Shown here piece by piece: positions 20,206-26,637 of a stretch of 64,000 nucleotides of DNA. A program made the position numbers and the translations under genes. The stretch's first letter is position 1, and the number at the start of each line of letters is the position of its first letter. A model generated the notes under the pieces. The model did no database searches. It was not told the origin of the DNA and saw nothing but the letters and a program-made list of their open reading frames with translations. The stretch lies in the sequence record OU509535.1; one strand, given 5' to 3'.

Positions 20206-21099
20206 ATGAAAGACTTTTTAAATTTCTCTGTACTATCTGTAAAAGAGCACTTTGATATAATTAAAGGAAGCTCTTTAAGCAATCCACCATTTAATTCAAT
20301 TCATAAAAAAACTTATAGAAATGCAATAATTTATGAACTAATGGACTATGATATTTGTTTTTATAAACACGACGGTGATAGTACTGAATTTAGTATTCAG
20401 GATCATTCATTTAATCTACCGTGTTATTCATTAGTTGAATCAAGAAATTATAGTTCTTATTGTTCACATGATTATTCGTACAGAAAAGATTTATACACAA
20501 ATGAATTGTCTTACAAACAATTCACATTAAATGGTATTGATTATGCAAAAAACACATTTAATGCAAGTGTAAGATATCATAGTATTTCTGATAAAATCAA
20601 ATACAATCGAATTCTTACTGACTATAATTACTGCATTCGTTCATTATATAGTGATATCAATAATATAAGTGCAACTGCAATTGAATCAGAATTCTTCAAC
20701 AGAAATTTTCAAATTTTAGAAAAATCTAAAATTAGTACTGGATTTGTATTCGAATCTAATTTTGATATTAGTATACCAAAAGAAAATAATAATAAATTAT
20801 TAACAAGTGTTCACGTTAATCTAAAGAAAGAAACAAAAGATAGTAACACATTATTTGAAATGAAATGGAATTATGATGATAGATTGGTATTTGAATTAGA
20901 TACACCAGATGCAAGTATTATACATTTATATAATACACTATACACATTTCAATCTGAATTGTTGTTTGGTAAAACCGATTATTATCATTTTAAAAATTCA
21001 TTAATTTATCTGGAAAAAATATTAGAGTATTATAAATCAGAATTACCCATAATCAGTATTGTGTTAGAAAATATTAAGAGGAACAAAGATGGAAACTAA
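20206..21099 (+). CDS. Hypothetical protein
   Basis: 297 aa intact ORF, no motif recognised. Confidence 0.75.
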   Translation: MKDFLNFSVLSVKEHFDIIKGSSLSNPPFNSIHKKTYRNAIIYELMDYDICFYKHDGDSTEFSIQDHSFNLPCYSLVESRNYSSYCSHDYSYRKDLYTNELSYKQFTLNGIDYAKNTFNASVRYHSISDKIKYNRILTDYNYCIRSLYSDINNISATAIESEFFNRNFQILEKSKISTGFVFESNFDISIPKENNNKLLTSVHVNLKKETKDSNTLFEMKWNYDDRLVFELDTPDASIIHLYNTLYTFQSELLFGKTDYYHFKNSLIYLEKILEYYKSELPIISIVLENIKRNKDGN

Positions 21100-21397
21100 T
21101 TTTAAAATTGTATTCAAGGAATTTTTAATTCCATACCTTGGAAAGAGATTTATTCCTTATAATGCAAAGAAAGTACAACACCCAGATGGTACTGAACTGT
21201 ATTTGGTTGAAAGTACAGAACAAGATGCACTTGATTTATTCCTAATGCATATCAAGAATGCAAATTCAGACGTTTATAACAAATATTTTGAGTACTTGTA
21301 TAATGAATATATTCTTGAATTCCAGGATGAAAATATGTTCAGATTAGCAATGAGTGATTATTCTGAATGGTCAAATATCGTAATTGGAACAAACTAA
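21089..21397 (+). CDS. Hypothetical protein
   Basis: GAGGA SD; 102 aa. Confidence 0.75.
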   Translation: METNFKIVFKEFLIPYLGKRFIPYNAKKVQHPDGTELYLVESTEQDALDLFLMHIKNANSDVYNKYFEYLYNEYILEFQDENMFRLAMSDYSEWSNIVIGTN

Positions 21398-21420
21398 ACT
21401 AAACAAGAAGGATTAAAATT

Positions 21421-21807
21421 ATGCGTGATGAAAAGACAAGTAAAATTCTAAAAGCAATCGGTGGTGTTCTTATTATTGATGTAAAAGGAGAACCAAAACT
21501 TTGTGCTATGGAAGATCTAAAAAAATCAAAATTCTTTGATATTGGTTCACTCTTCAATGCTATCCGAGTGCTGAATAATAAAGAAGTTGAAGATTATGGT
21601 CTTAAATGGCCTACATACCGTGATGCTTCAGGTGAAATCAGCAATTCATGGAAAACAATTCAGGAAGTACACAGTCGTTCTGATAATGATTGGGACTTTA
21701 TCGTTGCTGTCTGTGAACAACTAAATGAAGAAGTACCTGAAGTACTGGAGAAATATATTGTATTACAAAATCTGGATAGTTTTCGTAATGGAACTTTGCA
21801 GTACTAA
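21421..21807 (+). CDS. Hypothetical protein
   Basis: AAGGA SD; 128 aa. Confidence 0.75.
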   Translation: MRDEKTSKILKAIGGVLIIDVKGEPKLCAMEDLKKSKFFDIGSLFNAIRVLNNKEVEDYGLKWPTYRDASGEISNSWKTIQEVHSRSDNDWDFIVAVCEQLNEEVPEVLEKYIVLQNLDSFRNGTLQY

Positions 21808-21837
21808 TTAACAAAAAAAACATAAAGGAATATAATA

Positions 21838-22125
21838 ATGAAAGAACAAGATATGGATATGGAATACGATTTTATTAAAATTGAAGAAGGTGAAGAGAGT
21901 GAACAAGTAAGTACACAACTTGTTGCTAATACAAAACGTTCAATGATCGCCCGCAAACCAACCAGAACGCAGGAGGAATATGAATCGTTTATTGAATCAA
22001 AATACACAGAAGTCCATTATATGCAAGATGGTACACCATATGACGTCACCGTTACAGTACTGAAACCTGAAGTTAATGATCTTGAAGGTTTAAAACAGTG
22101 CTACGCATACCAAACACGTAGTTAA
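21838..22125 (+). CDS. Acidic hypothetical protein
   Basis: AAGGA SD; 95 aa. Confidence 0.75.
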   Translation: MKEQDMDMEYDFIKIEEGEESEQVSTQLVANTKRSMIARKPTRTQEEYESFIESKYTEVHYMQDGTPYDVTVTVLKPEVNDLEGLKQCYAYQTRS

Positions 22126-22134
22126 TATATTAAA

Positions 22135-22163
22135 GGCAGAGATGTACTTCTCTGCCAATTTTT
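22135..22163 (+). terminator. Intrinsic terminator
   Basis: GGCAGAGA-tgtact-TCTCTGCC then AATTTTT. Confidence 0.75.
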
Positions 22164-22194
22164 AATTTAAAACAAAATAAGGTTTAGTAGATAT

Positions 22195-23055
22195 ATGAAA
22201 TTATATTTTTTATTTTCTTTTGCTGAAGATATGTATGGATTTGCAGAAGTTGCAGAAAGTGATGGAATCTCATCACATACCAGGCATCAAAAACACCCGC
22301 ATGAGTTTTATAATAATTTATTCATGTTTATGCAATATAAAATTTTCTCATCTGAATTTGATAATTTAGATCACCCATGGGAATTACCTTTAATTGATAT
22401 TCCAGACGAATACGTATTTCAGTTCATGTTAATGGGTCTGGAAGACTATGACTTAGTTGTTTATAACTACAGAACTAAACGCATTATGCTTGGAACTCAC
22501 GATAGTTCCATTGTATATGTTTCAAGTACTAATGATGAGTTAGCGTCTGATGAAGGTAATTATAGAAAATCTTATGGTTATATAGAAAATGATAATGATT
22601 TTATTTTAGATTTTCGTGTATCAGAAGAAGAAAGAAGAAAAAGAGAAACTTATCAAGTGGAGTTAAAACCAGATAATGGTTATAATGAAATTTTGGAAGT
22701 ACTTAAACCATACTACCTTGATATTGTTTATAAGAAATATAAACGCCTGCTAAATCATCTTAGCGAAAAAGAACCAATTGGTTTTGAAACCAATTCATTA
22801 CGTAATAGCATCATATTTCCACCTAGAGTAATGAAATATGGTGAAGTTTCTAAACACAAGATGAAACTATATCCCGATGATATTGAAGTTCTATATCATT
22901 CGTGGTTGAATAATGATGAACTATATGTAGAAAATAAAAAGTTAATGCGTATAAGTAATAATGATGATAGATTGCTACAAGCGTGGTATAATGATTCATA
23001 TTCTGCATTTACTGACAGTAATTCTGAGTATTGGAAGAACACAGGACAAAATTAA
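22195..23055 (+). CDS. Hypothetical protein
   Basis: 286 aa; PDEYVFQFML loosely echoes the FQYST module. Confidence 0.75.
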   Translation: MKLYFLFSFAEDMYGFAEVAESDGISSHTRHQKHPHEFYNNLFMFMQYKIFSSEFDNLDHPWELPLIDIPDEYVFQFMLMGLEDYDLVVYNYRTKRIMLGTHDSSIVYVSSTNDELASDEGNYRKSYGYIENDNDFILDFRVSEEERRKRETYQVELKPDNGYNEILEVLKPYYLDIVYKKYKRLLNHLSEKEPIGFETNSLRNSIIFPPRVMKYGEVSKHKMKLYPDDIEVLYHSWLNNDELYVENKKLMRISNNDDRLLQAWYNDSYSAFTDSNSEYWKNTGQN

Positions 23056-23058
23056 ACC

Positions 23059-23086
23059 AAGGACGGCGTAAAACCCGTCCTTTTTT
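23059..23086 (+). terminator. Intrinsic terminator
   Basis: AAGGACGG-cgtaaaac-CCGTCCTT then T tract. Confidence 0.8.
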
Positions 23087-23122
23087 AATACATAAATATC
23101 TGAACGAAAAATAGATTTAAGA

Positions 23123-23137
23123 TATAATGTTTATAAT
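23123..23137 (+). promoter_or_regulatory. Two tandem -10 boxes upstream of the non-coding element
   Basis: TATAAT at 23123 and 23132; -35 poor. Confidence 0.45.
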
Positions 23138-23138
23138 T

Positions 23139-23771
23139 ACAAGGATGTTGGATGCACAGGATGTGCATACACTAAAAACCTGATCCACTCGAAACAAGTA
23201 GAGGGCAGATGAGTATACCAACAATACGCCGTGTAGAGGATACCCGTTTAGGCGAGTCGACACGTTAAAGGGCAAAGGTAGCACGATTGCCCCAATCTCT
23301 CAGGAGATTGATAGGACGCGAATCCAGTTAAGTCTGGACATTAAGTGTAAAAGGGAGATTATTTTCTTTTAGATATTTTGGAAATAATCACAGTATTGAA
23401 TTGCTTGAATAGTTCGGTACTGAAGTGCAAGTATGTTTAAACTTGTGACCGTTGCATGTGACTGCGATAAGGGGAAACCGGGCAACCCGCCTCTGCCTAA
23501 TAAATTAAATTTATTAGAATTCGCAATTCAAGGAATTTCGACAGCTACGAGCTTCAAGGCTTAGCTTTTTATTTCTCTTCCCCTCCCTGTGGGGGGATGA
23601 AAATATCTCGTGCAAACGCCTTCAAGTATTGAAATTCACGAAGTGAATTGAAATTACTTGGTTCTGTAGTCGAACGACAGTGAGACGTGAGAACAAGTAA
23701 TTTCTGCATGTATCAACGAAGTGACAACGAGTTGATACATAGCACTTTAAAACATTATTGAATTCAATAAT
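23139..23771 (+). ncRNA. Candidate large structured non-coding element (ncRNA or replication origin)
   Basis: 740-nt gap with no ORF of 60 aa or more, GC well above flanks, many perfect hairpins (see findings). Confidence 0.5.
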
Positions 23772-23795
23772 TAATATTATTATGGTTTTAAAGAA

Positions 23796-24407
23796 ATGAA
23801 TTTAGAAGAACAGAAGAAAATCGCTTCAAGAAAACAAAAGAAAGGGATTGATATTAAGTACTTGAATAAGGAATTTCAAATAGTTCATAATCCAGATAGT
23901 TCTTTTTGTGGTTACAGAATACGAACAGAACAAAATACATTATCTAATATAAGCGAGTATGAAAATGGTACTGAAATAGGAATTATTCATTTCAGACCAA
24001 CTCAAACTCCAACAATACTCGGAGCTAGATATAAACAATATTTTGAAGAGAGATATACCAATGGAAACATTTCTATTCATTATACATTTTATAAAAGTGT
24101 ATTAATTGGTGAATACAAGAAATATGATTCAGATGGGAATTTAACACTAAGAGAATTCTATGATGGAAATGGTGATTGTACTAAAGAAATAAAAGAATTC
24201 ATTGGTTTTAATGGAACCGATGAGGAATTTATGCATTACGAATTTAAAGAAGATGAAGAATTTAATATATTAATGCGATATGGTTCTCACTTCAAATTAA
24301 TAAAAGAAATAAAGTTTAAAACAGAATATTTTAATTACGTATATGAAAATTGCCTCAAACGTGGCTATATACGCAATGATTTAAATAAAAAGAAATACAA
24401 ACACTGA
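23796..24407 (+). CDS. MORN-variant/YwqK-like repeat protein
   Basis: YENG, YTNGN, GEYKKYDSDGNL..EFYDGNG repeats. Confidence 0.55.
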   Translation: MNLEEQKKIASRKQKKGIDIKYLNKEFQIVHNPDSSFCGYRIRTEQNTLSNISEYENGTEIGIIHFRPTQTPTILGARYKQYFEERYTNGNISIHYTFYKSVLIGEYKKYDSDGNLTLREFYDGNGDCTKEIKEFIGFNGTDEEFMHYEFKEDEEFNILMRYGSHFKLIKEIKFKTEYFNYVYENCLKRGYIRNDLNKKKYKH

Positions 24408-24430
24408 GTTCAAATAAGGAAAACGATTTC

Positions 24431-24949
24431 ATGGAAAAGAATAAAAATAAACACGCGGTGCATTTCAGTACAAGAAAAAATGATCTATGGACAACACCAA
24501 AACCATTGTTTGATAAACTAAATGCTTTGTGGAATTTTACAGTAGATGTTGCTTGCAGTCATGAAACAGCTTTGTGTCTTAAACACTACACACCAGAAGA
24601 TGATGGTTTATCACAGGACTGGAGTAACGAAACATTTTGGTTAAATCCACCTTATAGTGATTTATCTCCTTGGTTATCAAAAAGCGTTGAAGACTATAAC
24701 AGAGGTGCTACTGGTTTGATTTTGGTTCCAGCAAGAACTGATACCAGAGCTTTTCAGAATTTTGCTTCTCCTTTTTGTGATGCTATGTGTTTTATAAAAG
24801 GAAGGCTTAAATTTGGTAATCCACTAAAACCGAATGATAAACTATCATCAGCACCATTCCCTTCTTGCATTATAGTACTGGATAAGAATCTAACACAAGC
24901 GAAAATAGATTGCCTAAAATCTTTAGGAAACACTATGGTTAACATATGA
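24431..24949 (+). CDS. dam: DNA N6-adenine methyltransferase (phage Dam family)
   Basis: WTTPKPLF..L, DVACS, EDDGLSQDW, WLNPPYS catalytic motif, LVPARTDT, FIKGRLKF. Confidence 0.9.
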   Translation: MEKNKNKHAVHFSTRKNDLWTTPKPLFDKLNALWNFTVDVACSHETALCLKHYTPEDDGLSQDWSNETFWLNPPYSDLSPWLSKSVEDYNRGATGLILVPARTDTRAFQNFASPFCDAMCFIKGRLKFGNPLKPNDKLSSAPFPSCIIVLDKNLTQAKIDCLKSLGNTMVNI

Positions 24950-25482
24950 ATAAATGTATAATTACTTTTGGTAGAATAAACCCAATTCATTTAGGTCATG
25001 GGATTTTATTCAACAAAGTACAAGATATTAGTACTGAATTAAATGCAGATTTTCGAATTTATCTCAGTACTACACAAGATCCAAAGAAAAATCCACTTCC
25101 ACCTAATCTAAAACAATATTACACTTCAAATTTTTATCCAAACATTAAAGATGTATTGAGTACTGAAAGTAATGTAACTAATATTATGCAAGATTTGGAT
25201 TCTCAGTACAGTGATATTATTTTTGTTTGTGGATCAGATCGAATAAATTCCTTTAAAAAAGCACTTGACAGTGCCAATGGAAAATTATATAATTTCGATT
25301 CAATAGAAGTAATTCAGGCTGGGATTGAAAGAGAATGTAGCAAATATAGTAGTACTGCAATGCGTTCGTATGCACTTGATGGTGATTACAACTCATTTAG
25401 TACCTTTTTACCCGGAAAAGATGTTTATTTAAAAGAACAGCTATTTGAAGATGTTCGACTGTATTTGGGAGCACAAAAATGA
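24946..25482 (+). CDS. Cytidylyltransferase-like HIGH-motif nucleotidyltransferase
   Basis: TFGRINPIHLGH, KKNPL, VCGSDR, SSTAMR. Confidence 0.8.
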   Translation: MNKCIITFGRINPIHLGHGILFNKVQDISTELNADFRIYLSTTQDPKKNPLPPNLKQYYTSNFYPNIKDVLSTESNVTNIMQDLDSQYSDIIFVCGSDRINSFKKALDSANGKLYNFDSIEVIQAGIERECSKYSSTAMRSYALDGDYNSFSTFLPGKDVYLKEQLFEDVRLYLGAQK

Positions 25483-25769
25483 TTCTGTTTAACACCAATG
25501 CACTACATTGGGATGAAAATGAAAAAACTGGATTCAGAAAAATTTCAGTACTGTATAAATCAAACAATGTATTGAATATTATTGCAAATAAAACGAATAA
25601 TCAATGGATGACACAAGTGGTACCTATGGGTTATTCATATACAAAAGATGAAGTTGAATTTCTTGTTGAATTGTACAAAATTATAGTACCTGTTATGGAT
25701 TTTTTAGAACAAGATATCGTAATTACACATTCCGATGTTCTTGATTTTCTGGAATCCATAAATGTCTAA
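25479..25769 (+). CDS. Hypothetical protein
   Basis: ATGA overlap, 96 aa. Confidence 0.7.
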   Translation: MILFNTNALHWDENEKTGFRKISVLYKSNNVLNIIANKTNNQWMTQVVPMGYSYTKDEVEFLVELYKIIVPVMDFLEQDIVITHSDVLDFLESINV

Positions 25770-26022
25770 AATAGATATTTCATCTATATTCAATGAATCA
25801 TGGCTTGAGCTTCGAGATGAACTTGCTATCATTGAAAGTACCGAATTGTGGTTAATCAAGAGCCAAAAAAAATTCTCAGTAGAATTAAAACATAAATTAT
25901 ATCACGCATATAAAAATTCTCTACCTTGCACCATTAAAACACAAAACATTAATTACGATGGTAAAATAATATACTTAGACGATGGTTGTATATTTTATCT
26001 GTTAAAAATTGAATACATTTAA
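25762..26022 (+). CDS. Hypothetical protein
   Basis: 86 aa. Confidence 0.7.
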   Translation: MSKIDISSIFNESWLELRDELAIIESTELWLIKSQKKFSVELKHKLYHAYKNSLPCTIKTQNINYDGKIIYLDDGCIFYLLKIEYI

Positions 26023-26031
26023 GGAATAAAA

Positions 26032-26637
26032 ATGAATACTAATAGTAATACTTATTTTCGTTATCTACGTCTGGGTCTATCACTTCGTCCAGTACGTGGT
26101 TATTGTGATGATCTGGAAGATTTCGAATACGCGTGGGCAGTTCATTGTGAAAATGTACAATACGTACTTAATGATTTTGGTGAATTTGAAAAAGATAATG
26201 ATTCAACTTCAATGATGAATGCGATTGACAATCTTGATTGTATTGCTAATTCAGATCGTCATGAAACAGTACTTGCAGTACAGAAATATATTGAAAGCAA
26301 TCTGAGCAAGCCAGTTTGGTGCATGGTAAGCACTGAAGAACAACTTGGAATTACTTTTGGTACTGAAGATGGTTATGTTGCACAATTAATTATGGATTTC
26401 AGTACTGAAGAAAAATTCATTTCTTATCGTGATAAAATTTATCAAGCACTATTACGCAGTGGTATCAGTGAAGATCAAGTACCAGAAATTGCACCAATGA
26501 AAGATTTCTTCCTTATCCCAAGTGATGAAAAATATGATGCAATGTTTTATAAAATGAATGTACCTGGTGTTATTGTTGAACATTTTGATGATGATAATAC
26601 TGAGTGGTTGGACTTGGGTGATGACGAAGACGATTGA
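26032..26637 (+). CDS. Acidic hypothetical protein
   Basis: AAGGA SD, 201 aa, CGT/GGT-rich codons. Confidence 0.8.
   Translation: MNTNSNTYFRYLRLGLSLRPVRGYCDDLEDFEYAWAVHCENVQYVLNDFGEFEKDNDSTSMMNAIDNLDCIANSDRHETVLAVQKYIESNLSKPVWCMVSTEEQLGITFGTEDGYVAQLIMDFSTEEKFISYRDKIYQALLRSGISEDQVPEIAPMKDFFLIPSDEKYDAMFYKMNVPGVIVEHFDDDNTEWLDLGDDEDD

Follow-up and report, generated by a model that had tools for sequence, protein, structure and literature searches.

The 30 bases at positions 23139-23168 of the DNA analyzed here (a 64,000-nt stretch of record OU509535.1, referred to as the window) are probably structural parts of a large phage RNA and not a CsrB-like decoy for the host regulator CsrA. The preliminary description of this region had read them, from the sequence of the window alone, as CsrA/RsmA-type GGA hairpins at the 5′ end of a phage RNA that binds or titrates host CsrA, or is itself under CsrA control. 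We found that the segment forms part of a fold that covaries across a family of homologous phage RNAs and that the GGA triplets are not conserved within this family. The RNA matches no Rfam family and appears to represent a new large structured family. Its function as a whole would be independent of GGA.

The window belongs to a Klebsiella jumbo phage of the RaK2/K64-1 type (genus Alcyoneusvirus). It shows 98-99% identity to RaK2 and K64-1, whose genomes are ~346 kb in size, and 100% identity to an unannotated phage record from Klebsiella pneumoniae. The GGA motifs are housed in a 740-bp gap (23056-23795) for which the list of open reading frames contains no credible ORFs, bordered by the terminator of the upstream gene (23059-23082) and by the downstream ORF at 23796-24407. 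The G+C content of the gap is ~42%, versus ~29% genome-wide. No tRNA or tmRNA was found in a dedicated search, and Rfam 15 (4227 families) gave no relevant match, either for the whole window at the gathering score or for 22900-24000 at E ≤ 10. The features of the gap are collected in Table 1.

Table 1. Features of the non-coding gap and of the RNA it would encode, in window positions
Feature	Position	Strand	Remarks
Intrinsic terminator of upstream gene (ORF 22195-23055)	23059-23082	+	8-bp stem followed by a T-run; opens the non-coding gap
Promoter of the RNA	23101-23128	+	-35-like TGAACG 23101-23106, 16-nt spacer, -10 TATAAT 23123-23128
Single-stranded 5′ leader	23135-23145	+	Putative start; ends in GGA (23143-23145), where other genera have YYC; with 23146-23148 makes up CsrA-like site 1 (first hairpin of the preliminary description, 23139-23148)
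P1, 5′ strand (TGTTGG)	23146-23151	+	Long-range helix closing the 5′ domain
P2 hairpin	23152-23168	+	Second hairpin of the preliminary description; GGA 23159-23161 in apical loop; CsrA-like site 2 (CAGGAUG)
P3 hairpin (CUG..CC.CUC / GAG GG CAG)	23180-23208	+	Conserved GAAA-rich loop
P1, 3′ strand (CCAACA)	23218-23223	+	Pairs with 23146-23151
P4 (CGTGT 23230-23234 with ACACG 23260-23264)	23230-23264	+	Encloses a purine-rich conserved junction and the short P5 stem
Most conserved core	23463-23525	+	Three nested helices
Core helices	23463-67/23521-25; 23470-74/23490-94; 23497-99/23515-17	+	TGCGA/TCGCA; AGGGG/CCTCT; CTA/TAG
C-rich/G6 hairpin (~23577-23601) and CAAAC..CUUCAAG block	23577-23625	+	3′ limit of cross-genus conservation
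Variable 3′ tail of hairpins	23626-23771	+	Precedes ORF 23796-24407; without a detected intrinsic terminator

BLAST and nhmmer searches showed that the gap belongs to a family whose members are homologous over their full length. RaK2 carries three copies, of which A is the window copy, B is 85% identical to it and C is far more diverged; searches with copies A and C by BLAST and with the covariance model described below returned these three only. Four to five copies each are present in PBECO4, CBB, fHe-Yen9-04, XbC2, Hallingskeid, 7t3 and two IMG/VR genomes; copy number by genus is three in Alcyoneusvirus and four to five in Asteriusvirus, Mimasvirus, Eneladusvirus and the 7t3-like phages. The window and the full-length homologues from 8 further phage genomes comprise 37 distinct copies, all with nhmmer E-values of 1e-70 to 1e-180. 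We built a covariance model (R1) from the 5′ domain, realigned all 37 copies to it, and obtained a score of 68 bits for the window copy. IMG/VR contributed 18 more distinct 5′ domains; a 16-nt word of the core was found in 11 IMG/VR stretches, and the core word occurs in 60. The conserved body of the RNA is ~500-640 nt long. The promoter, the P1-P2-P3 domain, the P4 junction and the core can be aligned over the full length with covariation, which points to a single RNA family that, among the sequences examined, appears restricted to RaK2-like jumbo phages.

The preliminary description placed the motifs just after a -10 box, and this is borne out: the TATAAT at 23123-23128 is the window's version of the -10 box conserved in the family. 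A second TATAAT (23132-23137) is mutated in K64-1 and Muenster. Because this second box is destroyed in those phages and the conserved -10 is the one at 23123-23128, we infer that the RNA starts near 23135. The arrangement TGRRAC(R), spacer, TG-n-TATAAT precedes 37/37 copies, with -35-like variants (TGAAACG, TGGGACA or TGAACG) and an extended -10. In phage CBB, a "TGAAACG + TATA" promoter class lies mostly before DNA-synthesis genes, and a "divergent RpoD-like" class has been reported ahead of DNA-synthesis genes for CBB and GAP32 (PMC5259590). By its sequence, the promoter of the RNA matches the CBB "TGAAACG + TATA" class, is of this "divergent RpoD-like" kind and is likely a phage middle-type promoter.

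Transcription of the + strand, on which the CsrA reading depended, is almost certain, as judged from the promoter conserved in 37 copies and from G·U helix pairs that are strand-specific. One column pair of the core (55/76) is G·U in 25/37 copies and would be C·A on the opposite strand, indicating that the + strand is the one that folds. Two public libraries contain matching material in the form of contigs, which give no strand, 5′ end or expression level: an RNA library (X14) yielded a single perfect 212-nt contig (23220-23431) and a library labelled RNA-Seq (X5) a single 444-nt contig (23251-23692), with nothing real elsewhere in the 5.9 kb from 20500 to 26400. A third dataset (X1) covers the whole region and is DNA. 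The contigs weakly suggest that the RNA is abundant or stable. X14 and X5 are wastewater RNA libraries, and their contigs cover the element (23220-23692) but none of the phage genes on either side. Possibly the RNA is exceptionally stable, or is contained in particles.

Across the 37 copies, the positions assigned to P1-P3 are 94.7% paired, and 20 of their 21 base pairs show double-sided changes. When the partner strand was slid by 1-3 columns as a control, only 29-39% of positions were paired. The long-range helix P1 is 97.4% paired with covariation at all of its pairs (8/8), P2 is 89.8% paired (5/5 pairs covary) and P3 is 95.4% paired (7/8 pairs covary). Folding the 5′ end of the window by itself, as a single sequence, also yields P1, P2 and P3; in this fold P2 of the window is a 7-bp stem with a GGA triloop. 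A substitution within P2 in RCIP0023 (C23157T) keeps the pair as G·U. Further downstream, P4 is 98.3% paired with 4 of 5 pairs covarying, and P4 and P5 together are 99% paired. The core helices show many double-sided changes over the 37 copies, and their 13 pairs contain 1 broken cell in 481; the 10 pairs that make up the first two of these helices are unbroken throughout. Paralogs A and B have identical 3′ tails, whereas those of other genera are divergent.

The three hairpins originally proposed lie exactly where they had been placed (ACA-AGGA-TGT at 23139-23148, ATGCAC-AGGAT-GTGCAT at 23152-23168 and GTA-GAGGA-TAC at 23233-23243), and their fates differ. The second is real: it is P2, and it covaries in all 37 copies. 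We rejected the first and third on the family alignments, by pairing and covariation. The ACA/TGT hairpin is 62% paired, a value reached by 85 of 500 shuffles, and shows zero covariation; its 3′ arm, TGT, falls within P1. The GTA/TAC hairpin is 38.9% paired, and its GT is part of P4, whose junction contains the GGA concerned (23238-23240) and has the family consensus AAAAGAAA or AGAUGAAA at this point. The P2 loop itself is not conserved: it is mostly GAAA, a GNRA cap, with TAGT, TTGT, AGAA and others in the remaining copies, and paralog B has a different P2 stem without GGA in the loop.

These observations can be assembled into an architectural account of the 5′ end. A phage-type promoter would start the transcript near 23135, with ~11 nt of single-stranded leader emerging first. 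TGTTGG would then pair with CCAACA ~70 nt downstream and close the 5′ domain, within which ATGCAC and GTGCAT would form the stem of P2 as a peripheral hairpin, followed by P3 and, beyond the domain, by P4 and the conserved core. The GGA triplets would be a genus-specific overlay on the leader and the P2 loop, positions at which the remaining genera show a leader rich in pyrimidines and a P2 with a GNRA cap.

We noticed several further traits of the copies. About one third open with a strong hairpin and a U-run directly after the promoter (e.g., L038:1426-1460, L011:6728-6760, L035:1430-1462, L045:1433-1462, L037 on the - strand and L026:826-860); such a start, absent from window copy A, resembles an intrinsic terminator or attenuator located at +5 to +35. 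Some copies also contain an optional module of ~45 nt (consensus around UUGUACAAUAUAGAUCCGUCCAAAAUUUG), for which there are two insertion points: it follows AAGGGAG in, for example, L030, L056 and L043, and the core in L022, L024 and L051. The module seems to act as a transposable structural domain. Paralogs A and B are near-identical over the 3′ two thirds (~23350-23790) and ~65-70% identical in the first 220 nt, a pattern that suggests either that the 3′ part underwent gene conversion recently or that the 5′ domain has been under divergent selection.

The claimed match to the CsrA consensus holds in part. Site 1 (TTACAAGGATGT) matches RUACARGGAUGU at 11 of 12 positions, and site 2 contains an exact CAGGAUG. 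However, site 2 carries only the 3′ half of the SELEX word, and words with ≤1 mismatch to RUACARGGAUGU occur twice in the window versus 1.28 expected. Moreover, site 1 inherited some of its likeness to the CsrA word from the family consensus of the leader, AUACAA-YYC-UGNUUG; only the replacement of YYC by GGA is genus-specific. The ACA...UGU context of the first motif likewise comes from family-conserved leader and stem bases. The additional GGA triplets noted downstream are at chance level (12 in 23139-23771 versus 10.9 ± 2.3 expected from dinucleotide shuffles, P = 0.38). Three GGA within 23 nt occur in 24% of shuffles, and GGA-loop hairpins with ≥6 bp number 23 on the + strand of the window. 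At the same time, the + strand of the 64-kb window has only two CARGGATG words, both here and 16 nt apart, and nowhere else in the window do three GGATG fall within 30 nt.

Conservation in related phages had been proposed as a check, and the GGA motifs are missing from most homologous RNAs of the sister genera. For a finer count, we folded the 5′ domains with P1 and P3 fixed and scored a GGA as exposed when both G were unpaired. By this measure, paralogs A, B and C have 2, 2 and 1 exposed 5′ GGA, whereas in other genera 2/34 copies have an exposed GGA and 0/34 have one in a hairpin loop. In the window copy, 1 of the 2 exposed GGA of the 5′ domain is in a hairpin loop, and a third GGA lies in the conserved junction. 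Shuffling the unpaired letters of the variable 5′ part (from the start to P3) gave 0.77 exposed GGA expected versus 5 observed in Alcyoneusvirus, and 4.8 expected versus 1 observed in the other 34 copies. A shuffle of all unpaired letters indicated a stronger depletion in other genera (2 GGA versus 17.5 expected), which we discount because most unpaired G are in conserved blocks; when the variable part alone is considered, these genera are mildly depleted. Paralog C is very different in sequence and nonetheless has GGA in a 5′ hairpin loop. The enrichment in Alcyoneusvirus 5′ ends, the two neighboring CARGGATG words, the loop of paralog C and the L098 copy described below together suggest selection for the motif, which a structural reading alone leaves unexplained. 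Because paralogs A and B inherited site 1 from a common ancestor, the number of independent events is small.

Among the 18 further IMG/VR 5′ domains, one has GGA in the P2 loop (L098, UGGAUG). This copy (L098:3681-3786, from a 357-kb IMG/VR UViG) carries ACAUGGAUGU in the P2 loop; it belongs to an unrelated lineage of another genus and would have acquired the word independently. Alcyoneusvirus copy B has almost this word in its leader.

We also weighed the proposal that the RNA is a sponge that titrates host CsrA like CsrB, CsrC and RsmZ, and so reprograms carbon metabolism and motility. The three copies per genome each have their own promoter and could therefore make the RNA abundant, and the GGA density of copies A and B (~24 per kb) is the highest of the 37 (mean 12.6). 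That density is still under half that of CsrB, which has ~60 GGA per kb, and the total GGA count is what chance predicts. Exposed GGA number only 2-3 per molecule, the rest being in stems or family-conserved blocks, and from so few sites we infer that the RNA is incapable of classical CsrA sponging. The homologues in other phages are without the GGA motifs. The CsrB, CsrC, RsmX/Y/Z and PrrB_RsmZ covariance models gave no match at the gathering score, and none in the element: the sole match at E ≤ 10 was PrrB_RsmZ with 12.9 bits (gathering score 44) at 22971-23089, outside it. With two of the hairpins unreal, GGA unenriched, the motifs missing from homologues and no model match, we regard titration of CsrA as very unlikely.

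Comparison with the known sponges leads to the same assessment. The phage RNA resembles CsrB/CsrC and RsmX/Y/Z in being non-coding, in having its own promoter and in containing words of the CAGGAUG type, including one within an apical loop. However, those RNAs are 100-370 nt long with ~5-22 exposed GGA, whereas the phage RNA has a body of ~500-640 nt and 2-3 exposed. Sponge RNAs end in an intrinsic terminator, and on the + strand between 23083 and 25000 we detected none; their promoters are UvrY/GacA-dependent, and that of the phage RNA is phage-type. Finally, unlike in the sponge RNAs, the GGA motifs are absent from most members of the phage RNA family. The phage RNA thus has neither the many exposed GGA, nor the model match, nor the small size with a terminator that mark a sponge.

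A more limited role for CsrA deserves closer attention. In this alternative, the 5′ end of the Alcyoneusvirus RNA gained two candidate CsrA sites, the leader ACAAGGAUGU and the CAGGAUG of the P2 loop, that serve one host dimer. We consider it unlikely, but not negligible, and being bound or regulated by CsrA is possible for this RNA as a genus-specific add-on. Several features favor it: both + strand CARGGATG words of the window are adjacent here, site 1 fits the SELEX word at 11/12 positions, and the GGA of site 2 is in an apical loop, the context that CsrA prefers. CsrA favors GGA or AUGGA in apical loops and can stabilize RNAs by masking RNase E sites (PMC5207318). Exposed GGA are enriched in the three paralogs and near-absent from the 34 copies of other genera, and copies A and B are without the protective 5′ hairpin (P0) found in many other copies. 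The motifs are also invariant in six Alcyoneusvirus isolates, although these are ~99% identical to one another, so the invariance means little.

Other observations weaken this alternative. E. coli, Salmonella, Yersinia, Erwinia and Pectobacterium, the hosts of the sister genera, also have CsrA/RsmA, and the motifs are not conserved in the phages of these hosts. Paralog B has lost the P2-loop site. About one 11/12 match per window is expected by chance, the window has many hairpins with a GGA loop (the 23 mentioned above), and the paralogs do not count as independent samples, since site 1 of A and B has a common origin. We looked for a phage-encoded CsrA (PF02599) in RaK2, PBECO4, CBB, 7t3 and Hallingskeid and found none.

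The closest parallels to such a dock are the flhDC and glgC leaders, which likewise have two GGA sites near the 5′ end at a spacing that a dimer can bridge, the second in a hairpin loop. A single CsrA dimer is able to span 10-63 nt between two GGA sites, and in flhDC two CsrA sites at the extreme 5′ end block RNase E. The GGA at 23143 and 23159 are 16 nt apart, with the second in the P2 loop, and so have the spacing of the flhDC/glgC type. Their position at the extreme 5′ end would follow from the conserved promoter, and no conserved ORF comes after them. In contrast to flhDC and glgC, the phage RNA has no controlled downstream coding sequence or Shine-Dalgarno, and its "leader" is part of the conserved P1/P2 fold.

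Two variants of docking can be envisaged. Bound CsrA could keep RNase E away from the 5′ end, as in the flhDC leader, or CsrA that favors the ACA/UGU mini-hairpin could compete with P1 and remodel the RNA. As site 1 overlaps the 5′ strand of P1, occupancy would toggle the RNA between a P1-closed form and an open, CsrA-clamped form. The fullest version would have Alcyoneusvirus graft a one-dimer CsrA dock onto the large RNA, with occupancy either switching between the P1-closed and the open clamped fold or setting the half-life, such that the RNA reads the Csr state of the host (carbon, stationary phase); this version we regard as improbable. Should the GGA motifs have any function, it would be to dock a single CsrA dimer at the 5′ end of the copies from Klebsiella phages.

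A third alternative dispenses with an RNA-protein site: AAGGA (23142-23146) would be the Shine-Dalgarno of a 7-codon mini-ORF at 23153-23176, or the 6-5-6 palindrome would be a DNA operator directly behind the promoter. The mini-ORF, an ATG and 6 codons followed by TAA, starts inside P2. AAGGA, 6 nt and ATG make an ideal spacing for translation initiation, and the palindrome would lie at about +18 to +34 from the putative start. But the mini-ORF is missing in paralogs B and C and in all other genera, and in the 37 copies the palindrome is an RNA hairpin that covaries between unrelated sequences, as the operator of a single repressor would not. We therefore hold out very little prospect for either form of this alternative.

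Structural parts of a large RNA thus remain our preferred reading of the 30 bases, and the RNA as a whole invites comparison with two groups of known RNAs. GOLLD, ROOL and OLE are large ornate RNAs of phages and bacteria with structures solved by cryo-EM (PMC12286853). The RNA described here shares with them a phage-borne length of ~0.5-0.6 kb, many covarying helices, GNRA-capped peripheral hairpins and optional modules; it differs in its own promoter class and in having 3-5 evenly spaced copies per genome. No model of GOLLD, ROOL, OLE or other large RNAs among the 4227 families of Rfam 15 matched it. We also considered PA5oct ncRNA004, a 619-nt lncRNA identified by RNA-seq (PMC7318152), and rejected homology: the similarity is weak and confined to 48 nt of a C-rich/G-rich hairpin (E = 0.01 for a 1.4-kb target), and model R1 found nothing in PA5oct. 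A literature search found no described large RNA of jumbo phages and no phage CsrA sponge.

The second group comprises origin-primer transcripts, namely ColE1 RNA II and T4 oriF/oriG, which are likewise promoter-driven, structured, non-coding and several hundred nucleotides long. The T4 oriF/oriG transcripts come from middle promoters. As further parallels, the RNA described here has several copies dispersed around a T4-related genome and a promoter class tied to DNA-synthesis genes (in CBB, PMC5259590). Copies within a genome are all on one strand and ~60-85 kb apart, and this even spacing suggests a position-dependent role, such as at replication origins. In CBB, the copies are at 32, 94, 174, 258 and 336 kb of 378 kb; we calculated that five points placed at random would show a minimum gap of 62 kb with P ~0.001. 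Spaced copies are also seen in records L021, L022, L023, L024, L025 and L026, alongside window positions 23139-23771. Spacing, promoter class and size may thus recall origin-priming transcripts and the ornate fold GOLLD and ROOL, as resemblances only, and the likeness to origin primers concerns the whole RNA and not the GGA motifs.

The case of this 5′ end illustrates that a close match to a protein consensus can be mostly a by-product of RNA architecture. Should CsrA bind the genus-specific GGA sites, the RNA would be a rare example, from a lytic phage, of an RNA wired to a global RNA-binding regulator of the host, and CsrA pull-down would provide a handle for isolating it. In either case, RaK2-like jumbo phages keep a large ornate RNA in 3-5 evenly spaced copies of their genomes.
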